A stretch of DNA of 64,000 nucleotides from Penicillus capitatus (GCA_965649825.1 OZ287694.1:1797197-1861196); one strand, 5' to 3'; shown: positions 29,063-54,795, counted from the stretch's first letter. Notes: generated from the sequence alone by a model not told the origin. Numbers and translations are program-made.

Positions 29063-30216
29063 TCAGTGACTGGGCGCCTACATCACACTCTCGCACACAC
29101 AGCCCCACTCTGTCTCACACTTTACTTGATTGTAGTGGACAGAATCTTTCTTTCCTTTCTTTCCTTTGTTTCGCGCTTTGGCTTCAGCCGCAGCGATCTC
29201 AACGCATTTCTTAGAACTGTTTCGTTTCTTCACAGATTTGCTCTTCTCTAATTTGCTCCTTATCTGGCCAGGAGTCAATGCTGCGCCATCGTCCTCCGCA
29301 GCTTCCTCGGTCACACTTTCCTCAGTGACGGTTTGTGTGATCGTTTCTTCTGTCCCGGCAGTGCTTCTTTTCTCGCGATTCTTCCTATTTTTCTTCTTGC
29401 TCGATGGATCTGCGTTTTTGGCATTCTCGTTGACGTCGATTCCCAGATCGGCCAACTCTCTATCGAGATCCTCCATCTCCTTCTTCTTCAGCTCCTGCAC
29501 ACCCATCCAAACAGAAATCCAGTCTCCTCAGAAGTGTGACCATCTATCCGTCACACCTTTTTCGAGACTTTGCGTTGCGGCTGGACGTGATACTTTTTTC
29601 GGTGTTCCTCCAGCAACGCCAACTCCTCTGCCACCGCACAAACAAACATCACACACTGTACAGTACAATGCTCTGTTGACGCACCCGCCGACGGTTCTGC
29701 CTTAGTTTCTTCCTTCTCTTTCTCTTTCTCTTCCTGTTCCTCATGATCGTCCTCCGGACCCAGCTCCACGCCAAAGTGCGCTTGCAGATCAATCTCCTGC
29801 ATCGCAGCATCGCCTCATGCGATCGCCTCGTCCCGATCCCTACCTCTTCACTTTCGTGGAGGTCTGTTTCAAGACTCTTCCCGTTTGACACATCGGCACT
29901 CATCTACAGTCACATCGCCGACGGTTCTCGACCCATACACGTCTCTCATCTCTCACGTGCACTCCTGGATGTGACCCCCATTCATCATCATCTGCCCAAT
30001 CGCTCACATTGGACGGTCTTTGACCTGGACCCCATGACAGACATCGTATGGGCGTCCCTCTGCAGGTCAAGTCTAACTGAATATCGCCTGTTCAAGGCGC
30101 AGGTTCTGTTCCGTCTTGGCTGCGCCTTTCTTCTTCCTGTCTTTCTCTTCTGGTTTCTTCTTTTTAGCTGTTCTGGCGCTGAGGACTTCAAATGGGTTGT
30201 TCAAGTTCAACTCCAT
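29063..30216 (-). CDS. Conserved uncharacterised Lys/Glu-rich protein of the green lineage (multi-exon)
   Basis: Pieces MELNLNNPFEVL, NVSDWADDEW, RKVSKKELKKKEMEDLDRELADLG, AAAEAKARNKGKKGKKDSVHYNQ resemble a plant family I recall as NVFAAL...SWAD...LSKKERKKKELAELEALLADFG...HYNQ. Exons joined by ~45-55 nt introns. Confidence 0.65.
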
Positions 30217-30398
30217 ATGTGGGACGCCCGCGACGGAGTCTCGAAAAACGTTGACGTCGTCGCTGAAGACACAAAACGACACTGAGAAAACGCGCAAAGC
30301 GGGAATCGATGCGGACGGAACCACAGTCGAGTTGGTAAGCAGTGGTATTTGCTGATAATATGATGTGACGTTTGTGTTGTGGGCGTGACATAAGGTTT

Positions 30399-31120
30399 AT
30401 GGCCTTTGCAGTCCATAGAGTCGCCTGTGCACAAATCGCTGCACATCTGACGAGGACCGTCGTTCGACCGAACAGCAGACGCTGCTTCGTCGTCCGAGCA
30501 GATCCGACAAAGATAGGGGACAACGACTTCGGCGCTCGGGACCCTTTTCCCGAGGAGCTTGCGAGTAACTTCGGCGATAAGGTATCTCACTCTTTTCTCA
30601 CACATTTCGCGAGCGGCGTGGGTCAGGTGATCGGTCCAGCCAACACGGAGCACCTCATCAAGCCGCCAGATCAGATGAAGAACGTCTTGGGACTGCAGGT
30701 TCGCAAATGTGTCCCTTGCGAAGGTATCTCACACTTTTCTCACACATAGATGCGATGCGCTGTTTAGGAGGCATGCCTGCGTTGAGTGAAAAGGAGATTG
30801 ATCTGCTTCGGAATCAGGTTGCCGGTTGGCAAGTGGTGACAGATGCCGACGGGCGTTCCGTCAAGATCCGTTCGGAATGGGACATGCGTGGCTTCTCAGC
30901 CGCTCTGCAGTTTTTCGAACGCATCGGCAAGATCGCCAACGCCGAAGGGCATCATCCAGATCTGCACTTAACGTCTTACAGACACGTCTGTGTGGAGTTG
31001 TCCACGCATGCCGTCAATGGTCTCACGGAGAACGATTTCATCATCGCTGCCAAAATCAACGCAATGGACGTATCGGATTTATTGAAGAAGAAGAAAGGAA
31101 ACAAAAATTATTGGGCTTAG
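30399..31120 (+). CDS. RAF2: RAF2/SDIRIP1-like plastid pterin-4a-carbinolamine dehydratase-family protein
   Basis: Transit-peptide-like N-terminus, then DFGARDPFPEELASNFGDK|VIGPANTEH, KCVPCE, EGHHPDLHL, GLTENDFIIAAKI and C-terminal WA-stop, matching the plant RAF2 pattern. Introns 30582-30626 and 30724-30767. Confidence 0.85.
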
Positions 31121-31636
31121 ATAGAGCAAAGGATGGCGGCGGCGGCGGCAGTGCGGACACAGTACACCAAACTATGAACAGGGCCAATACCAACAACAAT
31201 TGAGATACTGAGTGAGAAATCCTCTTTTTCACGCAGTGAACGAAGTGCCAACTTGTGGTGGCGGTTATTAAGAGTGGTATCCTTTTCACGAGATTCGGCG
31301 TCATGTGTCAACACAAACGATTGAACGAACGAACAAACAAACATTCGCATCTCACAGGGACAGCAACAGGAATGATGTACACAGCAATTTGGAGAAGAAA
31401 TGAAAAAACGCGTGGTGTTGTTTTTTCCAAGCTTCAGAACAGCGAGATGTGTCAACGATCGATGTCTCTGCCCTCCGAATCTTGCGGCAGAGAAGTTGGA
31501 TGTACATCTGAAGTCTTCTTCAGAGCTTCTCGAACTCCTTCCAGTCTGCGGGTGCATGCGTGCATGCCGTCTCAAGATTGTTTGTTGCCAAGAAATCATT
31601 TGAGTTATTATGGTCGTATCGTGTGTGAGAATTCCG

Positions 31637-33835
31637 TCAGCATCGGCGATCTGGAGGCAAAGAAAGAACGTTGATGAGTTGCGGAAAAACCTCGACGGAA
31701 ACGGTCTCGGAAGGGATCACTTCGCCGTCCACCGTCAGCCAGGAGGCACCCTCGATTGGCTCGAACAGCAAAGCTCTTATCTGATATCCACAAGAGTCGG
31801 CAGGCGGCTCAGCGAGGGGCGTCGAGCGAACCTTGCAGACATGGACGTTAGGAAGGGAGAGATGCTCGCCTTTTTGAGATTTGGTTAAGAATCTGTACAT
31901 CGCTCGTCGATTGGATTTCGGTGTTGGTACTTTCATCAGGTGCAGCGCTCCGTCGTTCAACCCAGCCTAGAACGGTGAGAAGAGTGTGATCACTCTTTTG
32001 GAAAGAGTGAGATGGACATGAGGCATGAAACACGAAGTTTTCGAAATGTAAGGGATGTTCAAGGCTGCGAGGAGTCGAATGTCGCAGTCGGGTTCGAGAA
32101 TCCAATTTCCGTGTCCATGCGCACTCTCCGTGCTCTTCTCTGTAAACCACTTCATCACCTGTGGCCCAATGACCTCTGATCACACATCCGCATACGGCCT
32201 CTCACTCTTTTGCCGGAATTTTACTTGATTCGAGCGTCAGGGGTCTGTCTGCACAGGAGTCGGTCTTATGGGGAACTTGTGCATTATCGCTGCCGGAGGG
32301 TGGCGGCGGAGGTGGCGGCGGCACTATTGAAGGACCTCCTGCACCCGAGGCGTCATGGCCTGAGAGATTTGGACGGTTATGAGGGATCAAGAGTGAAAAG
32401 TGTGACCTTCGGGGTGTGTTAAGGATGATCCTTCGTCCTCAGGTAAGTATGCGAGTTTCACTCTGTAGCGTTGCATACGATAGAGTTCACGAATGGCGCC
32501 TATGGTAAAGCGGCAATCTCCCATCCACCGGAGATTCTCACTTTCTATGTCAATGGCAGACAGTGCGCCATACATGATACCCAAAAAACTGTAGCATCTA
32601 CGCGACAAGGTTCTCACTCTTTTGCCTTTGGCTCTGATGTGACGTCTCACTTGTTCCCGTCTTGGTCAACGGAGAGGACATCCATTCTTTGTACATTATG
32701 TTTTGTCATGGCAATCAAAGCTGAATCTATATCCGTGATCTCTGCAGGGCAATCTCGTCAAAAGAGTGAGATCGATGTGTGAGATGACCAAGGGAGGTCG
32801 CGAGAGCGTTTCCCGATCCGATAGGGAAAGGAATAAGCGGAATATGGATACAATCCCTCCAGTCATCACGCCTCAGTAAACCCTGGAAGCTATGTGGAAA
32901 CTGCCTGTGTGGATGGGAGGGATGCTTTACCTCAAGGGCCTCATGTATGGTCCCATCACCCCCCATCAGTGCTATCATCAAGTATTCCCCCAGATTGACC
33001 CTTGTCGCAATAATTTCTTTCCCGTGACCTGTTATCACTCTTTTTTCTATGCGTCAGGCGCCGCCAAAAAGTGTGACCTCTCTCTGTGGTCGATTCGGAG
33101 TCACATCTCCATCCGAGGACATGACGGACGAACGGAAATACTTTTTCGTCGAAGATCTTCTGAGCCCTGAAGTAATAGAGTGAAAAGAGTGAGATCCGTG
33201 TGTACTGACGTACTTCCCCCTTCCTGCTTTTGGATTGATCATAACGAGTATCTTTGGTCGTTCGTTCTGGCTCCTCTGTACTTCATTTCGAGCCAACTGT
33301 CGTATCCCTGTATCGCACGAACATACATCTTACACTCCGACCGCCGCCTTTCTTTTCTCACACCTCTCACTAACCGCGGAGCCCTATCGCCAACCTGAGT
33401 GTCGATGTTCTCCGTGTGACGCAGAACGACCCTAAACGTCACATCACATCACTCTTTTCCTAGCGCCACGTCACATCACCTCCGTTGCGGAGCGCCGCTC
33501 CCTGCCGTCGCTTGATAGTGGATACGAAATTTCGAATGCGAAACAACCTCAGCTCCGATCAGATCCCTAACCCTTAACTACGTCCAGGCATGTCGCAACA
33601 TCCCCTCATTGCTTCGTCCCTTACGCTAACGTCTCTATGTCGGCCAGAGGCGCCACAGCATCTCAGTCGCGTCTCCTACAGGACGCAGCGTATCACGTCT
33701 GTCGATCGATGGCGGCGGGATGACGTGTCCTCTGTTGGGGGTCAGTTGAATTCCTGAATGGGTCATGGTGAACGAGCACGTGTCGCCACGGTACACAACG
33801 GTTTCGGTCAAGGTATCGTTCCGCGCTTCGGCCAT
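31637..33835 (-). CDS. SPHK: Sphingosine / long-chain-base kinase (DAGK catalytic domain), multi-exon
   Basis: All five SK motifs in order: INPKAGRG, GGDGTIHEAL, PIGSGNALATSL, IDIESENLRWMG, TVDGE. Start (MAEARND at 33835) is uncertain. Confidence 0.88.
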
Positions 33836-34118
33836 TGCGACAGGCGCACGTACACACGCAGAGTCGTCGAAAGAGCTGGAACAGGACGTATCGTCGTTGT
33901 CAGACGCTTCACGACAAACAGCCCCGTCAGATGTCACTTCGCTATCGCTCGTGGGAAAGATGAGGTTGAGCGGAGCCGCGAGACGCACGTTGTTTACAGC
34001 GGCGCAGCCAACGGATGCGATTAAGAATATCTGCACGAACAAACACGCGGCGCCGTGTCGAAGCCCCGCGAGCAGCTCTTGCCGTCGTCGAGGTCAGGAA
34101 ACTGCGAAGAAGCGGTGA

Positions 34119-37785
<3,667 letters not shown>

Positions 37786-37874
37786 CGTGATGGGACGTCT
37801 TCTTTTTAATGTAGCGCATACATGGCGCTCAGAATGTTCATTTTGAAATCGAGCGTTTCTGTCACGCGTTTGTC

Positions 37875-40800
37875 ATGGATCGTCCCGACGCCACATCGTC
37901 TTCCGACCATCGCCTCGTCAGCAGCGTCACTCTATCGTGATCTCTCCCACTCAAAAAGTGTGACCACTTAAAGTATTGTGTAGAACGGCGGCGGCTGGGG
38001 TGCATACCGAACGTACCAACAGCGACAGCGACGAGAACAACGTCCGTTGACACGCGACGCATCTTCTTGGCCTATCTATCGCACTCTTGCGTCATCTAGA
38101 ACGACGAGGACGACGGAGAGCCACTCAAGGCGCCGCTCTCTGAGTTCAGCAACGCCGAGCTGTTTGGTATGCCGTACGCTGCCCTTACATGATGTGACGT
38201 TTGGAACACGGTAGAATGCGTGAACAAGAATGCCGCTTCCATTCCATCTGCTGCCAAGGTGCGGTCACTCACCTTGGCGCTCCACGAACCCTCCGCGATG
38301 ACGTGTAGCAATGGATATCGCGTTTTGTTGCGGATCGCTGCGGCGGTTTCGCCGAACTGATGTCGCTTCTCTTGCAAGGCGGCGGTGTGACCTGTCCCAT
38401 CACATTCACGACCCTTAACTCAGCCCAGCTCATCCTTTTCATCCAATCCCTCACGGATCTCTCCTCTGAAGTCAGCCCTCTGCGCAAACGACCACTCTTC
38501 ATGAAGGCACGGCGTGGTCAGTACTTTAGCGATGAGCCCTTCCGAGTGAAGAAAGGACAGAAGAGCTTTCGGCTAAACTATGGTAACATGTGGCAAGCGA
38601 TCGTGCAGGAGACGATCGCCTCTGCGTTGCTCTGGGACGACGCCTTCGTCGAGCTGTTGTCCACCGCCGTCGTTGAACTCTCAAAGTCGACGTCACATCA
38701 TCGACACGTCACATCTCACTCTTTCTGTCCTATCCAGGAGTCCTATTCGTTCCTTGCGCTATGTGGCGTGCTTCGCCGCCTGGAAGATTTCACTCGGCTG
38801 GATCGCAGCCCTGGATGCCAGCTGGGATGGACTCGTCACCGTCCTTCGCCAAATCGAGATCGAGCAAAGAAAGCGCCAGAACAAGGTCGAGCACCTCTCT
38901 GTCCCCTCTCTTACTGAACCGCATCCAGATCACGATCAAAAAGATCGAGAGCTTCCAGAAGACGCAAGAGATGTACAAGCATCGCAGCCATCGGTTACAG
39001 TCGATGCTCGAGAGGCTCTTCAACGGTATCTTCGCCCAACGATACCGCGATGTCTGCGAGCGCGTCCGGGCGATCACGACGGAGGCCATCGGTCAATGGT
39101 GCCTGCAGCTGCCACGCCTCTATCTCTTTGACGAGTATCTTAAGTACATCGCCTGGTCATTGAGTGACAAAGTGTGATCAAATGGATCCTCGCTCCTTGA
39201 GAGGTGGTTCAGGTAGGGGAGGTGCGATGGACGGCGGTGGTGGGTCTGACGAAGCTGTTTGAGAAGATCTCCGATTCGATTGTCCTGTCGGAGTTCCTGG
39301 TTCGATTTCGTGGGCGATTGTGTGAGATGGTGTACGACGTGGATGACAACGTCGCCGTTCCCTGTACGAAGCTTCTGGCGCTGCTCGTGCAGAAGGGCGA
39401 GATTCCGGTGCACGATATCCAGCACGTCTACGAGATCCTGACGGACGATGCTGCAACTATGCGCCACGCTGTGGCCGATTTGGTCTGCGCTCTGCTCAAG
39501 AGCAACGCCAAAGAAAGAGTGAGAAACGCCATTCCAAATTATTTCTCACTCTTTTATCCAGATGTCTTCCGACGGAGATGTCGGCGAGCATGCCGCCGTC
39601 TTCGATGGTCTGATCAACATTCTCTGTACATTAGCCAAGAAACAGGCACGTTGCGAAAAAGTGTGACGTCTTTGACTGCGTCTTGCTGTGCAGAATGGAG
39701 AAAAGTCGTCAGAAGCTGCCGAAACGGAATGCTGGACAGAAGGCAGCGGCCCTTCCGTCGTGACCTTCTCTCTGTCGAGCGATTTCGTCCGAAGCTTCAT
39801 CACGCCACTGTTCGACAAGTGCGCCCACCTTTACGTCACTCCTTTAGGAGACGGTCCATCTCGATGCAGACTGGAGGTGTTAAAGAACTGGCCTCTGCTG
39901 TCAGAGTCCTTGCGCCAGGAGATGGACAAGGGCGTGGACAGCCGTCTCAATCTCATCCTTCAAGTACTGGACACCTGTGTTCAGCTTCTGACAGATGACA
40001 AGCTCCGAGCCACACGAGGAAGACATCGCCGAGTGGAAGCCGATGATAAGATCCGGCAGGAGATGACGCGGCATACCATGGATTCAATGGCACAGTGGAT
40101 CGACGAGTTCCAGATGGACCCAACCAAAGTCAGCCACTCCACGTATCCTGTATGATCATCAGGTGTCGTTTCTAGGCGACGTGTTTGATCCGAATGATCC
40201 GCGGAATGAAGCTGGATCTCTTTGTGCTGCGCTCGGCGACGCCGTCGTTCATCGGGATTCTGGAAAACACGGTCGAAGTGCTATTCAAGCATCACGATAC
40301 GACGATCCTGGAAGAATGCATCTGTACCCTCATCGATCTCGCATCCCGTGCGCCAGAAGAGCTCAGAGTACTAGACACTTCTATCCAGATGCACGCTGCG
40401 TCTAACCGCCGCCGCCGTTTGCTCTTGTGTTTAGAGTCTGGGAAGGGATTACATCAAAGCGACCGGCCAAAGAATAGCGCAAGACGTCGCGGAGGTCCTG
40501 CCGCGCTTCTCTTCGCTTATGTCTTTGGACGAAGGTCGCAATCTCCTCACTGCCTTTTCGGTCACCCTCGAGAGAACCAAGATATTGCTGGTCTCGGATA
40601 ATCAGGGCGCCTTGGATCGGCCCCAGCTGTCCTCGCAGATCGTCGAACTGCTCTCCCTCTGTCAGAGCGACGCAGAACTGGCATGGATCTCAGGGGTCTC
40701 GCTCAGCCAGTGTATGTTCCTCCTTCTCCTCCAAGAACAGGCAGATCATCCGCCGTCGATATCCGATGCCGCGCGTTCTGCCCTGGAGCGCCTCTTGGCG

Positions 40801-42120
40801 GTGCAGAAGATGCTGTTGGATGCCGCTGCGCCGCCGGCGGCGCGCTGTGCGGCGGCGGGTCTCATGGTAGATCTCTATCTCCTCTTCGGCAGAGAAACCC
40901 TTTCGCCGTCGGATCTGCGCTTTGAACCGGAGACCTGGATGTTTTCTCCCCTATGGCCGATCCTCTCGCAGCAGATCCAGGACACGTCCTGCTCCCTGCT
41001 GGACAGATCTCATCAGACGACGCTCTGTCAAGCGGTGGGCATCTTGGGCAAGCTCGTTCTGTATGGAGATACAGAGATGGAGGCGATAAAGGAGTTCCGT
41101 GGGCAGTTCGTTGGACTCCTGCTCTCTCCTGTCCCGTCCGTCGCAGATCTGGTCCGATCTGTTATCCGTCGACTGCGCAAGTCACATCCCGTCGCTCTCG
41201 CGGATGCCTTTCTCAGGGCACTGACCCAGTACTTTACGGCAACACATGACCCATCGCGCGCCGCCTTTGCATCTCTTGCTCAGCGCATTTGTCAGTGCTA
41301 TACCGTCTTCAATGACACCACTGCTCGATCTCAGGCACATCAGCTCGTCAGCGAAGCCATCCGGCGTGTCACGGCGGAGGAATCTGCACTCGACCTCGCT
41401 TTCATCTCCGAAGGCTTCGCGTGCTTCGTTTCGAAACTCTCGGGCAGAAGCTGCGAGAAGATTAGAGAGCGACTGCTGAGCTACAAAAGGCAAAAGGAGA
41501 TCGACGAGGACCGCTGGAAAGTCGTCGAACCTTTCATCCGTTCCCTCGCCGTCAGACATCTCACACTTTTCTCACACTTATCCAGCCGCCATGCGTGATT
41601 TAGGAACGGGCGAGGCGACTCAGAGCGGCGGCGGCGCAAAGCATCCAGTCTATGGACCCACCCAACGCAACATCCGCGGCATTGAGAGCAAGCAGCGAGC
41701 ACACCTCTCCGCCGCCAAGACAGCTGCCATCGGCGTCGTCGCATTCGCCTGCGCCTGCCAGTCCTGCCATCCAGCTCAATTCCCAGGTCATAAAGCATGG
41801 TGTGATTGCCTTCAGCTGAGGTGTTGGTTTGTGCAGGGGAACTCAGAGAGTCGGGCGTTCGATGTGATAGGTTGGGAGTTTGACACCGCTACCTCCCGTT
41901 CGTCCCCGCCGCCTTCCGATGCTCCGGCGGCGCCCTCTGTTCACCAAGCGGTCAAGATCAGCGTCGCTCGACAGTACACTCTTCTCACTCTTTTGCATTT
42001 CTCACTCTTTTTTGCAGCTTGGACGAAGACGATGCCATCGGTCCCAGAAAGAAAACCAAACGCAGCGGATCGATTTCTCATACCACTGATGCCTTCGACA
42101 GCTCCTTGCGGTTGGAATGA
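37875..42120 (+). CDS. SCC3: Cohesin subunit SCC3/STAG (stromalin), multi-exon
   Basis: SPIRSLRYVACFAA, LFNGIFAQRYRDVCERVRAITTEAIGQWCLQLPRLYLFDEYLKYIAWSLSDK, FLVRFRGRLCEMVYDVDDNVAV, followed by HEAT-like repeats. Start and end (42089 or 42120) approximate. Confidence 0.88.
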
Positions 42121-42191
42121 TGTGACAGCTTCTTATGCACCCATTCTGTTATCTTCCTCGATTCTGGCCGAACACGTCTCGTCGTTGCGTC

Positions 42192-44082: not shown

Positions 44083-44184
44083 CAAGCGCAGGGGTGCGAT
44101 ACATCAACGGCAGGCTGTCTATGTCTGATACAATGACATCCATATTCGATAGTGGATAGAAACGCTGTAATAGAGATCGAGATT

Positions 44185-44541
44185 TCATGCGGCGGAGGAG
44201 TTGCCGTCGATCGATACGCCATCGGCGCGGAGCGACGTGACGAGATGATCGAAATCGACGTTTTCTAGGTAGTCAATCTCAGCATCGTAGTTTTCCTCCT
44301 CCAGATTCAGGCCTTCGCGTTGCGCCGCCGGCCAGCCTAGCCGCCAAACGTCGCATCACGGAGGAATGACAGAACAGATACCGCGCAGAGCGATGCATGC
44401 ACGATCGTAGGCTCGCGCCGCATCGACGCCCGTGACGAAATGCCCGAGATAACATTCGCCATCGCCCGTCCAGATACGCGCTCTCCAGTAGCGCCGGTGA
44501 CGATAGACGCCTTTGAATGGACTGGACGCCTCGGCGACCAT
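44185..44541 (-). CDS. Small AP2/ERF-domain protein
   Basis: SSPFKGVYRHRRYWRARIW...YLGHF...AARAYDRACIALRG | ...LNLEEENYDAEIDYL, with one ~45-nt GT-AG intron; upstream exons possible. Confidence 0.8.
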
Positions 44542-44669
44542 GACGACGATGTGACGTGTCGATGCGACGCGGTCAACTCGTCAGCGCCGTTTCGTCTTCC
44601 TTTTCCACTGCGTGATGTGACGTGTCGCGCTTTCCTCCATGACGTGACGTTTGAAGCCGTGCGTGTTCG

Positions 44670-47600
44670 ATGGCACTGGCCTGGCCAACGCCCACCGAGA
44701 CGTCCGCCGCCGCGCGTCTGTCCTTCGATGACGACGCCGACACCATCCCCCATCTCTGCAGCATCTGCCACGGAACGCGAGGTCGTCTGGTCACCTGTAC
44801 TGGCGGCTGTCTGCGTTCCTACCATCTGCCCGATCCCAACCAACGTCGTCCATTTCCACCCCACTCTGCTCTCTCATCGACTGGCGTTCCAGGCGATACG
44901 GATTGCGGCATTCTGAGACTCGATCCCGACGAGGCGGAATCTCTGTGGCGAATGCGAGACGCTTTTCTCTGTCCCCTCTGCACCAGAGCCGCAGACAGCG
45001 TCTGTTCGGAGTGTCGGGCGGAAGGGGAGAGCGATATGTGGCCGTGCAGTGTCGGCGGATGTTCGCACCGCTTCTGTGGGAGATGCCGTCACAATCCAGC
45101 CCTGCCAGCGAGCTACGGCTCGGACTTCTTCATCTGTCCCCAGCATTTCTGCAGCGCCTGTAAATCGGTGGAAGGCCAATCGGAGAGCAATCCGTTGATT
45201 CCTTGTCTCCTCTGCCCCAGAGCCTTTCATCTGAAGTGCCTGGCGGCGGAGAAGGATCCGATGCTGCACCAACGCATCCATCTTCATGAGAAACGCACGA
45301 ACGAACAAACACCTTTCAGCAAAGGCGTCCTCATATGCCCCTCCCACAAGATGACGCTCAAAGAGTACTGGAAGACGATTCTGGCGAAATGGAGAGCGAC
45401 ATGGCTCAGTGGGATCATCGCCGAAGCTTCCAGGCAACGAACGGTCAGCCCAGCATGCTTTCACCTGTCACATCAACGCTGCCGCCACAACAGGGCGTTC
45501 TGATGCTTCCTTGGCATAGCACGGTGGATCCCTCAACGAATGATGATCGGAATGATCAGCCGCCATCTGATGTGACGGATGCCAGAGTCGATCTCGTCTC
45601 GGTCTTGGGTCCCTCTCCCGAAGCGATGCACGAAGTGCATACGATCTTCAACGAGGCCGTCGAGTCTTCGTGGAAACGCAGAGCCTTTGCGGCCGATGCA
45701 TCGATCTTCCCCTACGACACCACACCGATGCTGATCAGTCCATCCCTGCTGACAGAATTCGAAAAGACAGTCGAACTGGCAAAGAGTCGACCACACGTAG
45801 CCCATCGCCTGATCACGCCTCAAGTCTCTCTCGACTGGCGGCTGGGATCCACCGTACATGTGTGTTGCAGTACCTGCGTCGATTCAAGCGCATCCGAGAA
45901 AGCATGCGATACTATCTCTGTCCACTCCATCATCGCGGAAACTACACGTCCTTTGGGCGGCATTTTACGAAGCCTGAGATCGTGAAGGAGATTGCCCGAC
46001 GGGTCGTAGGTTTGATGAAGACGGGGGATATGTTGGTGGATATGTCCTGTGGACGCAATGCCTTTGTCCCTTGCGTCAAAGAGCTCTGCCGCGACGAAGG
46101 CGTCGAGGTCACTCTTTCCATCTCACTCTTTCTGTCGTCCAGCATCTCCTGCAGATTATCGGGCGCGCCTACGATATCATCACGCCGTGCAACTTGGAGG
46201 ACTGGATTCGGCGAAGCTGGTTTGACGTCCATCCTGACGAGCTCTATATCGGTAAGGGGATGGAAGGGATGATGGCGTGCGAGGGCGTGGCTGCGACAGG
46301 CGATCGGTTGGTGATTGGACTGAATCCTCCTTTCGGTAAAAACGGACGACTGGCGGAGTTCTTTATACAGAAGGCCGCGGAATTCCGACCCAGACATCTG
46401 GTGCTAATCACGCCGCCAGTGACGCAGACGCCGCCGGGGTACGAACGGATCTACGAAGATCCGCATCTCTGCAGAGAAAAGTAAGATGCCACCTCTCTCA
46501 CACTTTTATCGAAGGAGAGGTGTGTATGCTCAGTGCCTTCTCGACCCCAGCCGGTAAAGATTCGAAGAATGCCGACACGCCTTGTCTGAGAATTATGGAG
46601 AGAAGAACGCCGCCGTTGCCAGCGGAATGCCGGACGGTGTGGGATTCGATGCAGATGGAAATGCCGGAGCGCGTACATAACGATACAGGAGGCATACCGC
46701 CGCCACCGCCGCCACCGCCGCCATCTCACACTTTTCAGAATTTACCAAACAGTGGTCGTGGTGTGACCCCTCCCCCGGTGGCATCGCCCACATCCGTCCC
46801 ACCGCACCAGGTGAGGTTTACGCTGTTCGCGTGCGTTCTGAGTGAGATGTGTGATGTAGATGAGTATTGATGGAGAAGAGAGGGCAACGGTGTCGGTCGA
46901 ACCGATGGCGGCTGGACAGGGCTGTTTTCAACGACAGCAGCCTTTGGTCTCGCAGGATCGACTGTTTCACAACCAGGGGCAAAACGCAACAAAAAGGAGT
47001 GAGCCTTACTCAGCGAAAAGACAACGACGCCATCGACATCCAGGCAACCAACCTGCACGCGTACAGCTACACAGACACTATCCGCCTCAGGCCAAGCGCC
47101 AAGCCGTTCGTCGATTCGATGCCTATCTTCCACCCGACTGGACCGACTCCGGCATCGGGGGTTGCGCAGGAAGGCCATCACATCGCCCTGAAAGCATAGA
47201 TTTGACGGAAGACGCCGCCGCACGGCACCAAAGAGATACCTATCTCACGGAGATGCTCAATCCGCCGCCTCCGCCGAGGATGTGCCGAGAGCCGGTGTCC
47301 GCTTTTGCTCCTCAGAGTATGGAGCACGTACGCAACAGCTTCTTCCCATCTGGTGATGAAGCCAGAGACCAACGCATACATCTCCCCTTTGCTGCCCCGT
47401 CGCCGCCGCCACCACCACCAGGAGAGGACTGGAGAAGATCCAGGAGTCCTTACGATGCCGGCGACTATGCCGCTCGTTCGCCAGACGAACTAAACCCTAT
47501 CTTCCGTGACGACCCTCTCCAGAACATCCGACGACAGGATCCTCTCCTTCGCGATCACGGCCTATCTGGCGCGTGGACGCAGGAAGCCGAATTCCAGCGT

Positions 47601-47918
47601 CCTTCGCTTTCTGGATCGTCCGCCGTGCAACCGCAGCTTCGCCAAGATGACCGTCTCCCTTCGTGGCCGACTGACCAGCGAGTGGTCGCTGCGCCAGCGC
47701 TGTATCCGGATCAGATGTCGAACGATCGACGTCTCGCCGCCGCTGTGGCGGCGCCGCCACCCCAAGGGCCCGTTCACGTACACTTTGCACCCGTGCAGCA
47801 CCACATCAACGTCCACGTGCATCCAGCGACATCCGAAACGCAGAAGCGAAGACGCCGTACCGTCTCCCATCTCCTCAAAAACATCGACGATCTCATCCGT
47901 GGCGACGCTTCACCCTAA
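44670..47918 (+). CDS. EDM2: EDM2-like protein: NSD-type PHD fingers plus C-terminal N6-adenine-methyltransferase-like domain and Pro-rich tail
   Basis: CSIC...LVTCTGGCLRSYH, FICPQHFCSAC, CLLCPRAFHLKC; then YTSFGRHFTKPE, GDMLVDMSCGRNAF, LVIGLNPPFG...LAEFFIQKAAEFRPRHLVLI, matching the Arabidopsis EDM2 C-terminal domain as I recall it (YTSFGRHFTK, DFCCGSNDF, GLNPPFG). Confidence 0.85.
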
Positions 47919-48093
47919 ACCATCCTCCCACTCTCCCCCGCGTCACATCGCTTTCAGCCAAGCGATGAAGCGCGATACATTCTTGTGGCCAATACCGGAC
48001 TCGACTTTACACAAGGACATCTGTTTACAGTTTCTCCAGAACAAGTCTATCAGGGAGATGGATCGATCTGTCCATAGAGTGGAAGCCAGTGCC

Positions 48094-48581
48094 TTAGGTG
48101 GTGAACGATTCCCCACAGCCACAGCTTCCCTTCGAGTTCGGATTGCGAAAGACAAACTCCTTTCTGCAGCACCCCATCATGCGTTGCCCAATAAACGGAC
48201 GCTCTCTACTTTAATCGGTCCTCCACGAAATCCATCGTCGTTCCCAGAACATGAATCAGCGCGCCCGGATCGATGAGCATTCGAATGCCTTTCTCCTCAA
48301 CCCGCTCATCAAATTTCCCGGGACTGTTGGCGTAGTTCAGTGTGTAGGTCAGTCCATTGCATCCCCGGCGTTTGACGCCGAGGCGTAGGTACTCCTGACA
48401 GAAGTGTGATGTGACAGCAGCGATGGAATGGTCAGGCACATGCCTTCTGTCGTGTTTGTAGCAGCGATCGAATGCGTTCGGCGGCGGAATCGGTGAGATG
48501 GATGGCAGCCTTGACTGGTTTCAGAACACGACGCGGCTGTTTCGCCGTTTCTGCGAGAGCGGCGAAGAGACGACCGACCAT
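48094..48581 (-). CDS. ISCA1: Mitochondrial iron-sulfur cluster A-type carrier (ISCA1/IscA)
   Basis: [17 protein letters not shown] | [20 protein letters not shown]...TMDFVEDRL | [21 protein letters not shown]-stop; first intron is GC-AG (48395-48443, 49 nt). Confidence 0.93.
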
Positions 48582-48584
48582 TAC

Positions 48585-50274
48585 TCAAAACATCAAACGG
48601 CTGACATCAGGATGCATCACAATGATACCATCATCTCGTGCGTCACGTCCCATCGTACAGCTACCCGAACGTACAAACGCGGGTGGATTCGAAGAGGCGC
48701 CGACATCAATCGGACGTTCGCGGAATTGACGTTCTAATCGTCGCATCTTTGCCTTGAGCGCTTCGATTTCGCGAAGGACGTTGTCTGAAGCGGCGGTGGT
48801 TAGAAATCCGGATCCTGTCCCGTCGATGGTCGGCAGCGGCGGCGGTGGCGGCGGAGGGTCGTCCATATTGTTCAGCGTTGCCTCTCTGTACTGTGACAGC
48901 GACGGATGTGACGTGCATTGCGTTGTTCTGTAATCACATGTCATTGCTTCAAAAGAGTGAGACATCTGGCGGTCCATATCCAATTTCAGTCGGTGGTGCA
49001 GATCCGTGTTCTCTTTTCGCAGATGCTTGATTTCTTCCCGCAACACGGCCCGTTCCGTTCTGGGATGCGCCGCCGTTCCCTCCAGAGACGCATCGTAGAC
49101 GATGCCTTTCGCCTTTTGCGCGTAGAGCAGTGTATTGAGTGTCTCTTCCTGATGGATGTTGCACGGAGAGCAGCACGTGATCATGAGCGTCAGTGCATGA
49201 CCACTCAATCCATCTTTGAGAAGCTTGGTCAGAACGGAATCGCGATAGGCGATGTGCACAGCGTGATGTGACGTCGACAGCGAGGCGATCACTTTGCCAA
49301 GGCAGAACAGACTCTTGTTGATCTTGGCCGTCTCGCGACGGTTCTGATCATGATCCTTTAGCCGTTCACTCCCAGCCAGATCCACAAACATCAACTTCCC
49401 GCCAGCTTCCTACAACAAACGTCAAATCACTGCCGCCGCCACGGTCCGTCATATGAGCAAGACGCTGGATTGGAGGTCGATGGTGAAGATGGTATGACTA
49501 CGACTCGAGCGGCCGTTGCGTTTATGACATCCCACTCTCCGCGTCTGCATACCGTGCTCAATCACCTCCATCACACTTTTCCCGTACACCGCACAAAAGA
49601 GTGAGATACCATGTGGACTGTGTCCATGGCCTTGCACGGGACCGTCTTGGCACCGTCCACATAGAATCCTCGATCGGCAGACCATCGAACGGCGAGTCTC
49701 GCATCGTGCGATGCCAGTAGATCGTACACCGATTCGTTATAGACCTCCACATACGTCACATCCAATCGAGCGTCCACCGCATCCTGCAAAGTGTCCAGTA
49801 CATAACGCGCCGCATACTGAATCACTCCTTCCTGTCCATCCTACACAACAGTCCTCAGTGCCCAACGAGAATCCACCGTTTCGCGACAAACGGGCGATCC
49901 AGTCATGGTATAGGTCTTGCCCGAACCGGTCGGTCCGTAGGCCAAGATGCAGACATGGTATCCGGTCATCGCTGCGTTGAGCAGCTGGTAGATGCCGAAG
50001 GCTGACAAGACGTCTTCTTGCATGGCCTCTCTGCCAAGACAGGCGTCAAAGCGCATCGTCCGTGCGAAGGGACGTCCGTAGGGCGATGCCAAGAGAACCT
50101 CCATGAAAAGACGTCAGGTGATGACGTCGGTATCGCGCAGAGGACTCTAAGGGCCTGCGGATCGTCCTCGTCCGTCTCGACGATTTCATGACGTCTCTCG
50201 CGGATCTCCATCTTCGTCGGCGGTCGGATACGGACACCGACGCGAATTCGACGCTCGTCATCGCGGGACGTCAT
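48585..50274 (-). CDS. Kinesin motor protein, KIF12/kinesin-16-like
   Basis: IRVGVRIRP, AYGPTGSGKTYTM, YVEVYNESVYDLL, LAVRWSADRGFYV, SSRSHTIF, FVDLAGSERL, INKSLFCLGKVI, IAYRDSVLTKLL, short coiled-coil tail. Confidence 0.92.
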
Positions 50275-50346
50275 GATGCGACGTGCGATCCGTCGTCGAT
50301 GGCGTTCAAAACACGCGACGCATGGACGCTGTCACATCCATCGCCC

Positions 50347-51420
50347 TTAAAAGCATTCGAGCAACGATTTGTGATGATAGGCCGAAAAAAGCAAAGCATT
50401 GTGCAGAATATGCGCTACGAGGGGAAACATGAGATTCTCCCTGGCAGTGACGGTGAGGACGCCCCACACGATTCCCGAGAACAACATTGCCAGAAACTGC
50501 CGAGTCGAGGCAATGGGTCGACTCACGTTGTCCGCCAGGGCGGCCAGCAGCGAAGCCATCGGGAAGCCGTATATGAACTCGACCGATACAACGACGATAC
50601 CACGGTAGAGGAGCTCCTGGAGCAGCGGCACAAAGAGGACGCCCGAAAGGTAGATCCAGATCATCGTCGCTCTGCGGTCCACCTTATCAATCGAATCCAT
50701 GTCGTCGGTGATGAACGGAACGAGCCATTCGACGTGGGGTTTCTGCAGTTCGGAGACAACGGTCCGCGTTCGGAACACCAGGAGCCAGTGCACAGCGGCG
50801 GCGGCGGCGGCGAACATGGCGGCGACGGGGAACAGCAACGGGTGGTAGGCGAAAAGGAAGGTGTGCAGTTGGAATGGCCCAAAGGAGAGCACCACATAAA
50901 GAACGGCGAATCGTATCGCCAGGGTGATACCCCGCCGAATGCGCCGAGGTTTTCGAAGTTCGATGACGCGCTGCGTCCAGTTCCAGAGAAGGAACGCCGC
51001 CGCCAGAATCCGAAACTGCGCTTCGCTCATCGCATCCAAGGCATTGTAAGACATGGCGATGGCGCCGAAGGTTATGCCGATGACGATAAAGGTGATCCAC
51101 AGACGCGAGAATGCCGATTCCAAACCATCTGCCAGAGTGGGGGCTGCGGGCGTGGCATCTGGGTCCGTGACCGATTCTCCGTCTGGATCTTGCTTGGCGT
51201 CATCTGTTGTCTGGACGGTGTCCTTATCGATCGGTTCATTGATGGAGACCGGCGGGTCGCAGTTCGCGACGAGCGATACCGTGGCGTTGCGTTTTGGCCG
51301 AGGGATGTGACTGGCCGTCGCGCTGAGGTGGGCGCTGCGTTTGGCTGTGGACCGTGAGCGGGAGAGCGATGCGGTCGAGGCGGAGCTGACGGGAACACGT
51401 CGTGACAGTCGCGTCTGCAT
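50347..51420 (-). CDS. CPBP (CAAX protease/Abi)-family membrane protein, probably plastid-targeted, intronless
   Basis: Ser/Arg-rich N-terminus, multiple TM segments, PLLQELLYRG (EExxxR-like) and AHILHN (HxxxN-like). Confidence 0.7.
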   Translation of the reverse strand: MQTRLSRRVPVSSASTASLSRSRSTAKRSAHLSATASHIPRPKRNATVSLVANCDPPVSINEPIDKDTVQTTDDAKQDPDGESVTDPDATPAAPTLADGLESAFSRLWITFIVIGITFGAIAMSYNALDAMSEAQFRILAAAFLLWNWTQRVIELRKPRRIRRGITLAIRFAVLYVVLSFGPFQLHTFLFAYHPLLFPVAAMFAAAAAAVHWLLVFRTRTVVSELQKPHVEWLVPFITDDMDSIDKVDRRATMIWIYLSGVLFVPLLQELLYRGIVVVSVEFIYGFPMASLLAALADNVSRPIASTRQFLAMLFSGIVWGVLTVTARENLMFPLVAHILHNALLFSAYHHKSLLECF

Positions 51421-51711
51421 CTCAACACGATGACGACGCGAACGGAGCGACCCACTCGGCGACACGCAATCGAGGTATAGGGATCGACAGATGGTGCTCA
51501 TCTGAACGCCAAGCCAGCTGTCACATCGACCTCGAAAACAAGCGACCGACGCAGCGAGCAGACTCCGCGACGCTAGACGCCAACGCGACGATTCTAACCA
51601 GTCCCTCCCTACCCTCCGCTGTAGCGACGCCTCACTGCTTCGTGTCCGGGTATGGACTCGGTGTTTTGCGCTTAGGAAACGAAGGGCGGAAAGCGGTCGC
51701 TGCGGATGGCC

Positions 51712-51783
51712 GTCACATCAGGCGCATCAGATTGGGCCACTCGCGGTCGCATCAGGCGTATCGGATTGGCCACTCGCGGTCAC
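51712..51783 (+). promoter_or_regulatory. 33-34 bp tandem duplication with ATTGG (reverse CCAAT) boxes in the CPBP/nitrate reductase divergent intergenic region
   Basis: gtcacatcaggcgcatcagattgggccactcgcg / gtcgcatcaggcgtatcggattggccactcgcg / gtcac; lies 180-250 nt upstream of the NR ATG. The repeat is seen directly; a regulatory role is inferred. Confidence 0.45.
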
Positions 51784-51960
51784 GATCGTCTGATTCCTCG
51801 TATCTACCGTATGGAGACTTCTCGTCATTATAGTGTGAAGGTTCGCGTTTACGACCAGCTACTTGACCGCTACGTCTGCCCCGTTCCAGTCTATAAAGCG
51901 CAATACGCGCAAAGGGCTGTTGTTATTAAACACGAGCTGTGCTGATTCTATTTGAACACT

Positions 51961-54795
51961 ATGGCTGCGACACTTGCTCAGAAATCTTTGGGAGCTCCGT
52001 TGGAAAAACGTAGGACGCGTGGTTCTGACGAAAACGCCTTTTGATCCACGTGTGTTTTTAGCGCTCGTCAAAGGGACGGAAGAATGGGAACGGCATCTGC
52101 CGGCAGAGAAAATTGATGACCGCGACGTGGGGACGCCCGACGGCTGGATTCCGCGGAATCCGGTGTTGCTGCGCCACACGGGCGGCACCCCTTCAACTGC
52201 GAAGCGCCGCTTGACAAACTAACGGACGCCGGGTTCATCACGCCCGTGTCGATGCACTACGTCCGCAACCACGGCGCGGTGCCGAAGATCGATTGGACGA
52301 GCCATCGCATCGAGATAAGGGGACTCGTCGGGCGACCGATGTCCCTAACGATGGAAGACCTCCTAAAGTTCCCGACCTTGACGATTCCCGTCACGTTGGC
52401 CTGCGCGGGAAACCGCCGCAAAGAAACGAACATGTTTAAGAAGACAGTTGGTTTAACTGGGGTCCAGGAGTAACGTCATGCTCCTATTGGACAGGTCGGA
52501 AAGGCAAAGGGTAAAGAGTGAGATCTGATGAGGGTTTTGGCTTAGGTGTGAGATTGTGTGATATTTTGATGTTTGTTGGGACAAAGACGCCAGACGAGGG
52601 AGCGAATCATGTCTGCTTCCGTGGGCCCACGGGAGAGGTGCCCAAGGGAGATGACGGCTCTTACGGGACGTCGATCAACTTGGGTCACGCTCTGGATCCT
52701 TCCAACGAAGTCATTCTGGCCTACAAACAGAACGGCCGATGGCTGACGCCCGATCACGGCTTCCCGATTCGCCTGGTCGTACCGGGCTTCACGGCTGGGC
52801 GCATGGTGAAGTGGCTCAGCGAGATCACAGTGTCCGACAGAGAGAGCAACAACTTCTACCACTACAACGACAACCGCGTCCTTCCTCCCCACGTGGACGA
52901 AGCCCTGTCCAAGGAAGAAGGTGAGCAGAGAAGCGCCCTTGTGCACCTGACTGAGGTGATGGGCTGCTGTTGCAGGATGGGTCTATAAGCCTGAGTTCAT
53001 CGTCAATGAGCTCAACATCAACGCCGCCGTGTCCCGACCGTGTCACGATGAGACACTGGTGCTCAAGGCGAAGAGTCCTTACACCGTGAAGGGATATGCC
53101 TACACGGGTGGCGGCCGCAAAGTGATCCGCGTGGAGGTGTCGTTAGATGCTGGCAAGACGTGGCGACTGGCTGAGATCGACCGTCTAGATGCCGAGACGC
53201 CGTTTGGCAAATCCTGGGCGTGGAGTTTTTGGCGACTGGAAGTGCACCCTTTTGATTTTCTGTACGCGGATGAGATGGTGATCCGTGCTGTCGACTCCGC
53301 ACAGAACTTCCAGCCGGATCAATTGACCTGGAACATGATGGGAATGATGACGAACTGTCACTTCAGAGTCCGCGTACATAAGAAGATGTGTGACGATGGC
53401 ACACTCTCTGTTCGATTCCAACATCCAGCGCCGCCAGAGGTAGGTGCTCTGGGGAACGTCGGATGGAGAGAGGAGGAATCCAAGGCCCGAGAACAGGAAG
53501 CACCTCCCGTAACCGTCGCACCTTTGGCCAGACTTTCGAGTCTTGCCCCTATTAAACTTCCATCATCTATATCAGACCTTCCAGGTAGCTTCTCAGTTCT
53601 ACCGAGTCTGTTCTCACTTTATGTCATGTTTAGTGATAAGGACGTATACGATGGGAGAGGTGGCGGCGCACATAACCGATGGATCGTGTTGGTTTGTGCA
53701 CGAGGGGAAGGTCTATGATGTGACAACTTACCTGGATGATCATCCGGGCGGCGCCGAGTCTATTCTGTTGGAGGCCGGAGGCGACGCGACGGTCGAATTC
53801 AACGCCATCCACTCGCTCAAAGCGAAGTCCATGCTCGAGAACTATTACATCGGAGATTTGGAGGAGTCTGAAAAGAAGGCCAAAAAGGAAGTGCCTGTGG
53901 GACGGGAACCGGTCGTCCACGTCCGAAAGCCGTCGCAAGTGCCCGAGATCGTGGAAGCTCCTTCAGCGCTCGACCCAAAGGCGAAGATCCGTTGCGAGTT
54001 GACAGAGAGAGTCGAACTAAACCACAACACACTGCTCCTGCGTTTCGCCCTGCCGTCTCCCGATCAGAAACTGGGACTGCCAGTCGGACAACACATGTAC
54101 CTCTATGCAGGTCTGCATCTCCCCCTCTTCTCATCTGGCAGTGAATTCGTGTCTGTTTTGCAGATATCCAGGGAGAGGTGTGCATGAGAGCATACACGCC
54201 GACGTGCTCCGACGAGCTGGGCTTCTTCGACCTGGTCGTCAAGATCTACCGAGCGAACGAGCATCCCGATTTCCCAGAGGGCGGCAAGATGTCTGCCTTC
54301 TTGGACAACATGAAGATCGGCGATACGATCAGCGTCAAGGGACCCACGGGTCATTTCAAGTACATTGGCAAGGGAGAGTACGTCAACAACCGACGTCCAG
54401 GAAAGGCGAAGCAGCTATCTATGATCGCGGCGGGCACGGGCATCACACCGATGTACCAAGTGATCAAGGCCGTTCTCAACGATCCCTTCGACGAGACCAA
54501 TATTAAGCTCCTCTATGTCAATCGACACGTGGAGGACATCTTACTTCGGGAGGAGCTGGATCAGCTGGCCCTCCTGCATCCGAACTTCGATATCTGGTAC
54601 ACGCTCACCGCTCCTCCTGCCGACTGGTTCTTCTCCACCGGTCGTGTCAACCTGGAAATGCTGAAGCGCACGCTCTTCCCTGTGTCTAAGGACGGTCTGG
54701 TCCTCATGTGTGGGCCGCCAGCTATGTGTGACACTGCTTGCAAGCCGAATCTGGAAAAGCTAGGGTGGGACAAGACCCAGATGATGGAGTTCTGA
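51961..54795 (+). CDS. NIA1: Assimilatory NAD(P)H nitrate reductase (Moco-dimer-cyt b5-FAD domains) with two apparent single-base deletions
   Basis: DDRDVGTPDGWIPR, HPFNCE, HYVRNHGAVP, TLACAGNRRKE, PDHGFPIR, NFYHYNDNRVLP, WNMMGMMTNC, heme domain HPGG/FNAIHS, RAYTP, MIAAGTGITPM, CGPP, MEF-stop. Frame breaks at ~52181 (ACG GG- CGG) and ~52452 (GGT TT- AAC). Confidence 0.95.

Follow-up and report, generated by a model that had tools for sequence, protein, structure and literature searches.

A stretch of 64,000 nucleotides from the genome of Penicillus capitatus (OZ287694.1:1797197-1861196), hereafter the window, contains at 29-55 kb a dense run of intron-rich housekeeping genes, recognised by Pfam and homology, in which tiny introns of unrelated genes share a short motif. 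This locus raises the question of whether such introns are the remains of a mobile element, an ageing introner resembling a miniature inverted-repeat transposable element (MITE) as a preliminary description proposed, or whether the motif has a function in the introns that carry it. The motif is here called M1 (full form AAAAGWGTGAGAT) and a second one M2 (GATGTGAC). The reading that we prefer, at a probability of roughly 0.45, is that M1 and in part M2 are functional cis-elements of ultra-short introns and not neutral repeat debris. The evidence comes from two loci, the 64-kb window and a 21-kb locus of a close relative (L020).

An unbiased k-mer ranking of the window placed the word families of M1 and M2 highest. 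The M1 core AAG[A/T]GTGA was found at 63 sites when third-order Markov simulations of the window gave 6.1 ± 2.4, and M2 at 46 sites (4.6 ± 2.2 expected). The word TCACTCTTTT was present in 23 copies over both strands (0.21 expected), all of them within 30587-49604, and GTCACATC in 46 copies (3.9 expected); GATGTGACGT appeared 18 times (0.44 expected). Neither motif had any site in the first 12 kb, and the maximum, 19 sites, fell in 32-36 kb. The M1 logo, AAAAG[A/T]GTGA[G/c]A[T/a], returned to background right outside its 13 positions. Thirteen copies of this 13-mer were perfect, 14 had one mismatch and 21 had two (expected 0, 0.4 and 3.3, respectively), the mismatches being nearly all at the outer positions. 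The M2 logo read T-GATGTGAC followed by GT or AG, and M2 is also written TGATGTGAC. The long composite consensus proposed previously did not hold, as the conserved unit is just the 13 nt of M1, and GTCACATC/GATGTGAC is largely a separate second motif which takes the form TGATGTGACGT in promoter-like spacers.

To place these sites, a set of 59 introns was used. Protein homology gave 33 of them, through a protein-to-genome spliced aligner in which GT/GC-AG introns and frameshifts were allowed, and the other 26 were predicted by a per-gene codon-model dynamic programming blind to intron content, with partial support from Pfam continuity and from the locus of the relative. The five introns of nitrate reductase (NR) were recovered with three different homologues; in AlaRS, 13 introns came from direct alignment and two more from the open spliced frame; and the 13 introns of a sphingosine-kinase-like gene (SPHK-like) were derived from P0241, a transcript-derived orthologue of a Logan assembly, their removal leaving a single open frame of more than 500 codons. 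The spliced products of the predicted introns gave Pfam domain matches (the PCD/DCoH protein matched Pterin_4a), and most predicted positions inside the locus of the relative were independently recovered there. At least two predicted introns, 41540-41585 and 45467-45519, have doubtful boundaries. The AG of the window model is missing in the relative at both places (41540-41620 versus L020 19880-19990, and 45430-45540 versus L020 15960-16070), which would be explained by misplaced boundaries in the prediction or by a shift of the splice site between the species. The 59 introns measured 49.8 ± 3.6 nt (range 43-62), with a G+C content mostly of 0.40-0.65 (about 50%), and their context was AG|GT ... 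T-N-Y-AG|G, positions +3 to +6 being nearly free of consensus and the pyrimidine tract not clear. Ab initio prediction by joining open frames was of no use, since it yielded 557 clusters spread evenly over both strands at 53% G+C. One intron, the 48-nt in-frame and stop-free 32883-32930 (- strand) lying within an open reading frame (ORF) of 108 codons, was exposed only by a gap in the homologue alignment. Separately, a transcript-like Logan contig (L006, SRR28002514) encodes an SPHK orthologue and aligns end to end over all 13 window introns, so a third related species with expression data exists.

M1 was present in 30 of the 59 introns (14 of the 33 verified ones), unevenly among genes: 8 of 13 in SPHK-like, 5 of 15 in AlaRS and 1 of 5 in NR. 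In the three homology-verified genes, introns had 11.4 M1 sites per kb compared with 0.45 in exons, a difference of about 25-fold (19 versus 3 sites, binomial p = 5e-11), and for M2 the densities were 3.0 versus 0.45 per kb (p = 0.01). Nearly all the remaining M1 sites of 29-55 kb were in predicted introns or over their 5' boundary, and the spacers between genes of this region were nearly free of M1. The sharing of the motif by tiny introns of unrelated genes and its occurrence in both senses relative to transcription (17 purine and 23 pyrimidine copies), both reported in the preliminary description, were thus confirmed.

The two senses occupy introns differently. Pyrimidine copies group at the extreme 5' end, where five introns start with G|TCAC[A/T]CTT and others with GTATCTCAC; 5 of the 23 begin at +2 and 10 lie no more than 8 nt from the 5' end. 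The remaining ones are found in mid-intron, upstream of a tail rich in T and C and of the AG. Purine copies are absent from the first 9 nt; they either lie inside the intron, at 5-34 nt from its 3' end, or are placed so that their own GT is the donor, the latter in at least four introns (42621, AAAAGA|GTGAGAT; 39519, AAAGA|GTGAGAA; 43464, AAAA|GTGTGAC; and 37302, AGAA|GTGTGAC). M2 is often located 8-30 nt upstream of AG; GATGTGAC|AG is the 3' end of at least two curated introns (34744 and 43464), and the window has 11 copies of GATGTGACAG.

Conservation was studied in the close relative. A search with the Rce1-like ORF gave one match, 72% identical, on a 1.18-Mb contig of the ENA, and the 21 kb surrounding it (L020) are syntenic for NR, Rce1-like, kinesin, IscA, the PHD gene, Ulp1 and SCC3. 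NR has 91% amino acid identity to its L020 counterpart, and identity at four-fold third positions is 0.50-0.76 (about 0.68 overall). L020 is enriched alike, with 20 M1 sites (1.8 expected) and 23 M2 sites (1.4 expected). Sixteen introns are common to both loci at the same position and in the same phase, with GT-AG retained. In these, 78 of 80 motif columns were identical versus 547 of 711 other intron columns (Fisher p = 6.5e-7), and exact 8-mers were kept at 14 of 22 motif sites versus 66 of 622 non-motif intronic 8-mers (p = 1e-8); several of the eight unconserved motif 8-mers were A/T toggles of the centre or slips of the local alignment, the motif being present. Every one of the 20 M1 sites of L020 has a window counterpart of the same orientation by position (colinear offset of about 61,480-61,545), and the spacers separating conserved copies have diverged. 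No sign of recent mobility was found in this comparison. The conservation of the motif cores over the rest of the intron indicates that the copies predate the species split and that they are under purifying selection.

Distant green plants were compared through the structures derived for five orthologues, the AlaRS genes of Astrephomene and Rosa and the NR genes of Ostreobium, Chlamydomonas and Physcomitrium. Introns AlaRS 34465 (Astrephomene), AlaRS 35321 (Astrephomene and Rosa) and NR 52921 (all three species) are shared with them, as NR 53585 possibly is. The shared introns are all M1-free and conventional, with GTATG or GTGAG, C/GTGAC and a T-rich tail. The five testable M1 introns (34744, 34897, 35125, 35836 and 52495) are all lineage-specific, and so are four motif-free introns; an association of M1 with lineage-specific positions is suggestive only.

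The near-exclusive intron location of M1 and its register with the splice sites point to a role in splicing, in which it probably acts. In introns of about 50 nt with no 5' consensus beyond GT, the motif would provide or strengthen signals for the spliceosome. Its purine strand would carry a good 5' splice site (GTGAG), at whose GT some introns begin (AAAAGA|GTGAGAT), and a purine copy in the 3' half could act as a TGAG/TGAC branch-like site. The pyrimidine strand would offer a branch-like CTCAC and then a pyrimidine run before AG, or alternatively would stand right after the first G of the intron (G|TCACWCTTTT). M2 (TGAT-GTGAC) may be an extended branch site within introns, where it resembles the C/GTGAC of motif-free introns, and since TGATGTGACGT is conserved in promoter-like spacers it probably has a second role as promoter element. 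The exact reverse-complement forms and the lineage-specific M1 positions suggest that the copies go back to an old introner-like insertion of palindromic form, which took place before the two species separated; the reverse-complement symmetry over 13 nt requires either such copying or recognition of duplex DNA. Our working model, which we hold at somewhat less than even odds, is therefore a hybrid: the origin would be ancient and introner-like, and selection would later have acted on the arms in their capacity as splice signals. A more specific formulation, which we regard as doubtful, is a reversible splice-signal module: a 13-nt element with a 5' splice site on one strand (AAAAGA|GTGAGAT) and a branch site plus pyrimidine tract on its complement (ATCTCAC-TCTTTT) could seed or sustain a 50-nt intron either way round, its copies being domesticated arms of an ancient palindromic introner, selected since other signals are scarce.

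Several data weigh against a splicing function. A role in RNA leaves unexplained both the A-run of internal purine copies and the exact 13-nt reverse complementarity, for which duplex-DNA recognition or copying fits equally well. Half of the introns, ancient ones included, presumably splice without M1; the internal purine copies, 5-34 nt from the 3' end, keep no fixed branch distance; and in introns with two inverted arms the predicted stems would make the 5' splice site inaccessible. Because the relative is close, the case for conservation depends on about 20 sites of a single 13-kb stretch. Finally, the difference by intron age (M1 in 0 of 3-4 ancient versus 5 of 9-10 new introns) is not significant (p of about 0.1-0.2).

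The genes of the region, assigned by Pfam/homology unless otherwise stated, are the following.

30.4-31.1 kb, + strand: PCD/DCoH
31652-33823, - strand: sphingosine-kinase-like (SPHK-like)
34315 to ~37846, + strand: AlaRS
From 38.3 kb, + strand: SCC3/STAG, with STAG and SCD domains in the spliced protein
42.9-44.0 kb, + strand: Ulp1 protease, with Peptidase_C48 continuity in the spliced protein
44.4-48.2 kb, + strand: PHD protein
48.2-50.1 kb, - strand: IscA and kinesin
50347-51501, - strand: Rce1-like, intronless
51961-54795, + strand: nitrate reductase (NR)

Individual introns of the region, together with two M2-bearing spacers, are listed below.

29495-29556, - strand: predicted intron of a gene without name; pyrimidine copy; codon model only
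30582-30626, + strand: predicted PCD/DCoH intron; GTATCTCACTCTTTTCTCACACAT; its first 24 nt agree with the next intron at 23
30724-30770, + strand: predicted PCD/DCoH intron; GTATCTCACACTTTTCTCACACAT
31967-32017, - strand: SPHK-like intron 12, 51 nt; tight inverted pair ATCTCACTCTTT-CC-AAAAGAGTGAT; fold z -3.3
32176-32224, - strand: SPHK-like intron 11, 49 nt; purine copy; 3' end GATGTGTGATCAG
32360-32406, - strand: SPHK-like intron 10, 47 nt; two direct pyrimidine copies from +2
32598-32650, - strand: SPHK-like intron 9, 53 nt; GTCACATC and purine AAAAGAGTGAGAA
32742-32788, - strand: SPHK-like intron 8, 47 nt; core pyrimidine ATCTCACTCTTTT, preceded by a degenerate 5'-end copy GTCATCTCACAC
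33029-33077, - strand: SPHK-like intron 6, 49 nt; GTCACACTTTTT ... AAAAAAGAGTGAT-AACAG, an arm at each end with a centre mismatch
33167-33213, - strand: SPHK-like intron 5, 47 nt; pyrimidine ATCTCACTCTTTT in mid-intron, then T/C-rich tail and AG
33432-33479, - strand: SPHK-like intron 3, 48 nt; GATGTGACGT, AAAAGAGTGA, GATGTGACGT; aligned to P0241
34465-34518, + strand: AlaRS intron 1, 54 nt; GATGTGAC and branch-site-like GTGTGAC, M1-free; position common to Astrephomene
34744-34799, + strand: AlaRS intron 2, 56 nt; start GTCACTC, purine M1 AAAAAGAGTGAGAT, end GATGTGAC|AG; position not in Astrephomene or Rosa
34897-34947, + strand: AlaRS intron 3, 51 nt; pyrimidine GTCACACTTTT at +2 and purine copy 7 nt before the 3' end, centres non-complementary
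35125-35171, + strand: AlaRS intron 4, 47 nt; perfect 10-bp inverted pair TCACTCTTTT / AAAAGAGTGA; fold -11.4 kcal/mol, z -1.8, the predicted stem covering the 5' splice site
35321-35367, + strand: AlaRS intron 5; ancient and motif-free, with GTATGG, CTATGAC and T/C-rich tail; common to Astrephomene and Rosa
35836-35886, + strand: AlaRS intron 7, 51 nt; purine copy and degenerate second purine copy; CAAAAGAGTGAGATGCGTT common with intron 4
37302-37354, + strand: AlaRS intron 15, 53 nt; AAAAGAGTGAC inside the intron, and AAGTGTGA at 37300-37307 as a second copy, its GT serving as 5' splice site
38692-38737, + strand: predicted SCC3/STAG intron; GTCACATC ... GTCACATCTCACTCTTTC, the composite form first described
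39519-39561, + strand: predicted SCC3 intron, 43 nt; purine copy forming the 5' splice site (AAAGA|GTGAGAA), pyrimidine copy before ATCCAG; z -4.4
39650-39700, + strand: predicted SCC3 intron; AAAAAGTGTGAC close to the 5' end
41540-41585, + strand: predicted SCC3 intron; two tandem pyrimidine copies; 3' boundary doubtful, AG missing in the relative
42621-42668, + strand: predicted intron; first purine copy forming the 5' splice site (AAAAGA|GTGAGAT), second internal; both kept in the relative, spacer diverged
42783-42838, + strand: predicted intron; AAAGTGTGAC ... GTGAGATGTGATCAG
42961-43008, + strand: predicted Ulp1 intron; purine copy
43327-43370, + strand: Ulp1 intron; two tandem pyrimidine copies, 16/16 motif columns the same in the relative
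43464-43511, + strand: Ulp1 intron; 5' splice site in AAAA|GTGTGAC, end GATGTGAC|AG; ends kept, middle diverged
43687-43741, + strand: Ulp1 intron; GTCACATC and purine copy; centre base T versus A between species, motif retained
43917-43964, + strand: predicted Ulp1 intron; two pyrimidine copies retained in the relative, leading GTCACATC not retained there
44548-44621, + strand: two TGATGTGACGTGTCG sites upstream of the PHD-protein gene, promoter-like; retained in the relative
46108-46154, + strand: PHD-protein intron; two direct pyrimidine copies, of which the relative keeps the second, the first being degenerate
46481-46533, + strand: predicted PHD-protein intron; pyrimidine copy, kept in the relative
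49566-49609, - strand: kinesin intron, 44 nt; GTATCTCACTCTTTT ... AAAAGTGTGATGGAG, both arms kept, T/T centre mismatch in both species
51520-51719, no strand assigned: spacer of the divergent Rce1-like and NR genes; two GATGTGAC sites (51520 and 51712), both kept at the corresponding positions of the relative (colinear offset)
52495-52545, + strand: NR intron 2, 51 nt; purine AAAGAGTGAGAT; absent in distant plants, kept in the close relative, with 8/8 motif columns identical in L020
52921-52975, + strand: NR intron 3; ancient and motif-free (GTGAGC..CCTGAC); common to Ostreobium, Chlamydomonas and Physcomitrium

Among the introns singled out in the preliminary description, AlaRS 35125-35171 and 34897-34947 were confirmed by protein-to-genome alignment, together with 34744-34799, and the segment 31990-32012 lies within intron 31967-32017 of the minus-strand SPHK-like gene. 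The SCC3 example is a real intron in the prediction, but at 39519-39561 and not at 39513-39560, and its purine copy straddles the 5' splice site.

As for the longer form of M2, TGATGTGACGT lies between divergent genes and just 5' of start codons (29815-30369, 38191, 44548-44621, 51520-51719, 19066 and 28355) and is kept at corresponding places of the relative (L020 9792, 9998 and 16861-16935). It contains a TGACGT core and has the look of a promoter element or transcription-factor site, separate from the motif of the introns. Past the apparent end of AlaRS, an intron-like segment of 58 nt (37926-37983; GTCACTCTATCG ... AAAAAGTGTGACC ... GTGTAG) may be an intron of the untranslated region or a non-intronic copy of the motif pair.

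AlaRS is of the chloroplast/cyanobacterial type, with top matches only about 64-66% identical, and NR is nearest to core chlorophytes (Logan transcripts at 59-65%, then Ostreobium at 58%). The first 29 kb of the window contain a retroelement and genes with long open frames. The retrotransposon (1464-9160, - strand) has long ORFs with reverse transcriptase and integrase domains and lies in the 12-kb stretch devoid of M1 and M2. Two classes of genes adjoin (12954-28000 versus 29000-55000): in one, introns of some 50 nt recur every 100-250 nt, and the other, with long uninterrupted frames, includes two MFS transporters, the Rce1-like gene and several unnamed ORFs; this split is also seen in the relative (L020 1-6700). 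The NR frame is broken twice by single-base gaps (52170-52180 and 52448-52455), which read ACAGG versus AC-GG and GTTGGGTTT versus GTT-GGTTT against the intact gene of L020, and either indel errors of the long-read assembly or decay of the gene in this strain would account for them. The 5' exons of SPHK-like (33432-33823) are about 500 nt from the first conserved AlaRS exon (34315) on the opposite strand, a head-to-head pair, and SPHK-like introns probably fall in the promoter or transit-peptide region of AlaRS. Neither Rfam nor tRNA scans found a match in the window or in L020.

Inverted repeats had been taken as the basis of this intron family. Of the M1 introns, 18 contain the pyrimidine form and 17 the purine form; both were present in 5, and 5.2 are expected if the two are independent (P = 0.66). 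Direct tandem pyrimidine pairs, also in five introns, are as common as inverted pairs. Inverted repeats are thus, given this chance-level pairing of arms, a by-product of two orientation-free copies within 50 nt, and not the organising principle of these introns.

Among the alternatives to functional intron elements, the one that survives best, unlikely as we judge it, is that M1 is a site for a sequence-specific double-stranded-DNA-binding protein in gene bodies (an intragenic enhancer or chromatin mark), introns being the only unconstrained DNA there. Freedom of orientation and sharp edges, the grouping in homotypic clusters, the tolerance of A or T at the centre and the conservation between species typify protein-binding sites. 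M2 also occurs in promoter-like spacers and is conserved there; however, promoter and intergenic spacers of the same region are nearly M1-free. The purine and pyrimidine forms are, moreover, distributed differently along introns, and splice-site register is too frequent for this explanation, as 5 of the 23 pyrimidine copies begin at +2 and the GT of several introns comes from a purine copy. The preliminary description had itself mentioned sites that define these introns. That idea stands insofar as conserved cores fit it better than an ageing MITE, and its DNA-binding version is retained at the level just stated.

We consider improbable that the introns are an ageing or still active MITE-like introner, that is, a palindrome of about 48 nt (GTCACATCTCACTCTTTT ... 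AAAAGAGTGAGATGTGAC) inserting at AG, with the left end of the element providing the GT, the right arm the branch site, and the present copies being functionless relics. The palindromic composite does exist, and arms reach the exact intron ends in 34897, 33029 and 49566, to which the GATGTGAC|AG ends can be added, but the chance-level co-occurrence of both arms and the equally common direct tandem copies do not agree with it. The similarity of introns from end to end was also not supported: a few pairs have 19-28 nt in common, a point in its favour, but the logo is at background beyond 13 nt and the mismatches spare the core, unlike in neutral decay. Identity of the flanks between copies slightly exceeded a column-shuffled null (5 left-side pairs with at least 6 matching bases versus 0.5 expected) because of few recurring double units, namely GTATCTCAC[T/A]CTTTTCTCACACAT in two introns of one gene and CAAAAGAGTGAGATGCGTT in two AlaRS introns. 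The first bases of introns are often G|TCAC[A/T]CTTTT, so the earlier proposal that the motif gives the GT donor was right in that part; its other part, that this is the terminal inverted repeat (TIR) of a MITE, was not supported, as the similarity ends at 13 nt and no locus-specific target-site duplication (TSD) past the universal AG/G was found in the intron set, a duplication of AG alone being indistinguishable from a protosplice site. M1 intron positions are missing from distant orthologues, which favours insertion. However, no clear presence/absence difference was found among the 16 introns shared with L020 (NR, kinesin, Ulp1, the PHD gene and SCC3), the few exceptions resembling boundary or alignment problems, and the purifying selection on the cores speaks against relics. 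Introner families averaging 55 nt are recorded in metagenome-assembled genomes (MAGs) of Nephroselmis and Tetraselmis, that of Tetraselmis being marked there as positive for both TIR and TSD (PMC9860276, Table S6), and medians of introner families range from 30 to 654 nt (PMC9860276), so small size alone is not an objection. Nevertheless, neither copies outside genes nor a longer or autonomous partner with the same ends were found in the 64-kb window, including its retroelement-rich first 12 kb, or in the 21 kb of L020. When metagenomes were scanned for TCACTCTTTT-N(4-30)-AAAAGAGTGAGA, 13 loci matched, and each of them resembles a chance occurrence or a bacterial terminator-like hairpin. One of them, the bacterial-looking contig L017, has two intergenic hairpins of about 80 nt (1180-1260 and 5400-5480) with arms ATCTCAC[T/A]CTTTT / AAAAG[A/T]GTGAGAT, compensatory centre bases and a terminator-like location between convergent ORFs; they were judged unrelated.

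Little credit, likewise, is given to M1 being merely the branch-point and polypyrimidine signal of the species. Pyrimidine copies of the 3' half do resemble CTCAC followed by a T-run and AG, and M2 and the GTGAC variants resemble the CTGAC/GTGAC of motif-free introns. However, such a signal should have a single orientation, and 17 of 40 copies are purine-sense; it should also keep a fixed distance to the 3' splice site, and purine copies range over 5-34 nt from it and pyrimidine copies over 0.1-0.78 of the intron, with 10 of these within 8 nt of the 5' end, while half of the introns have no M1. The weakest explanation, a hairpin of both arms that would define the intron or join its ends in the RNA, is largely refuted and has hardly any probability left: five or six introns form stems of 8-11 bp (z -1.8 to -4.4), but both arms occur in only 5 of 30 M1 introns, their folds (-7 to -12 kcal/mol) have z of -0.4 to -4.4 versus dinucleotide shuffles, mean z is modest (two-arm -1.8, one-arm -0.4, motif-free +0.4) with stable folds in no more than about 6 of the 59 introns, the variable centre bases of the two arms could pair in just 2 of 5, no covariation or compensatory change of the arms was found in the five two-arm introns and the kinesin intron of the relative, which has the same T/T mismatch, and the stems would occlude the 5' splice site.

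The M1 system is a variant of known things, introners and the conserved motifs of compact introns, and no new category. As in the introners of Micromonas pusilla, Aureococcus and the Nephroselmis/Tetraselmis MAGs (PMC9860276, PMC3879977), short introns of unrelated genes of a green-alga host share sequence, inverted termini can give a splice site, and positions are absent in distant relatives. Unlike in introners, only a 13-nt motif and not the whole intron is shared, TSDs were not found, the arms are uncoupled, presence/absence does not differ from a close relative and the copies are under purifying selection. The BOC1 region of Ostreococcus and other Mamiellophyceae, with housekeeping clusters full of 40-65 nt introns beside intron-poor genes, is similar in layout, and its introns are AT-rich (<43% G+C) and described as lacking conserved signals (PMC3491373, PMC3879977). 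Membership of BOC1 was rejected: the lengths of 43-62 nt are below its 75-nt limit, but the G+C content of about 50% is too high, half of the introns have a strong motif, the AlaRS and NR searches gave no close mamiellophyte match, and the host, with Ostreobium NR at 58%, is not a mamiellophyte. Compact or intron-poor eukaryotes have extended, strongly conserved 3' intron motifs, such as GACTGACG in Ostreococcus (Irimia and Roy 2008, PMC2483917). The M1 introns are alike in having a strong short motif in small introns, and M2 partly fits, but those motifs always face the same way and keep a constant spacing from the 3' splice site, neither of which is true of M1. Fungal introner-like elements, reportedly treated by van der Burgt and colleagues in 2012, are said to be similar over their full length and to decay into ordinary introns; short introns and some unusually stable predicted folds are common to both cases, although here such folds are few and the similarity is not full-length. 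In plants, signals of intron-mediated enhancement (IME) concentrate near the promoter, the Arabidopsis motif being TTNGATYTG. M1 is likewise a short intron-enriched motif with possible action at the DNA level, but it is spread along genes and in splice-site register.

If M1 is a working splicing element, it would offer a handle on how the spliceosome recognises 50-nt introns whose 5' sites are barely defined beyond GT, and it would be a rare intronic signal that tolerates inversion. If the copies derive from an introner, they would show the fate of such elements after a burst, with the arms kept by selection and the rest drifting, and would bridge the states of introner and ordinary intron.

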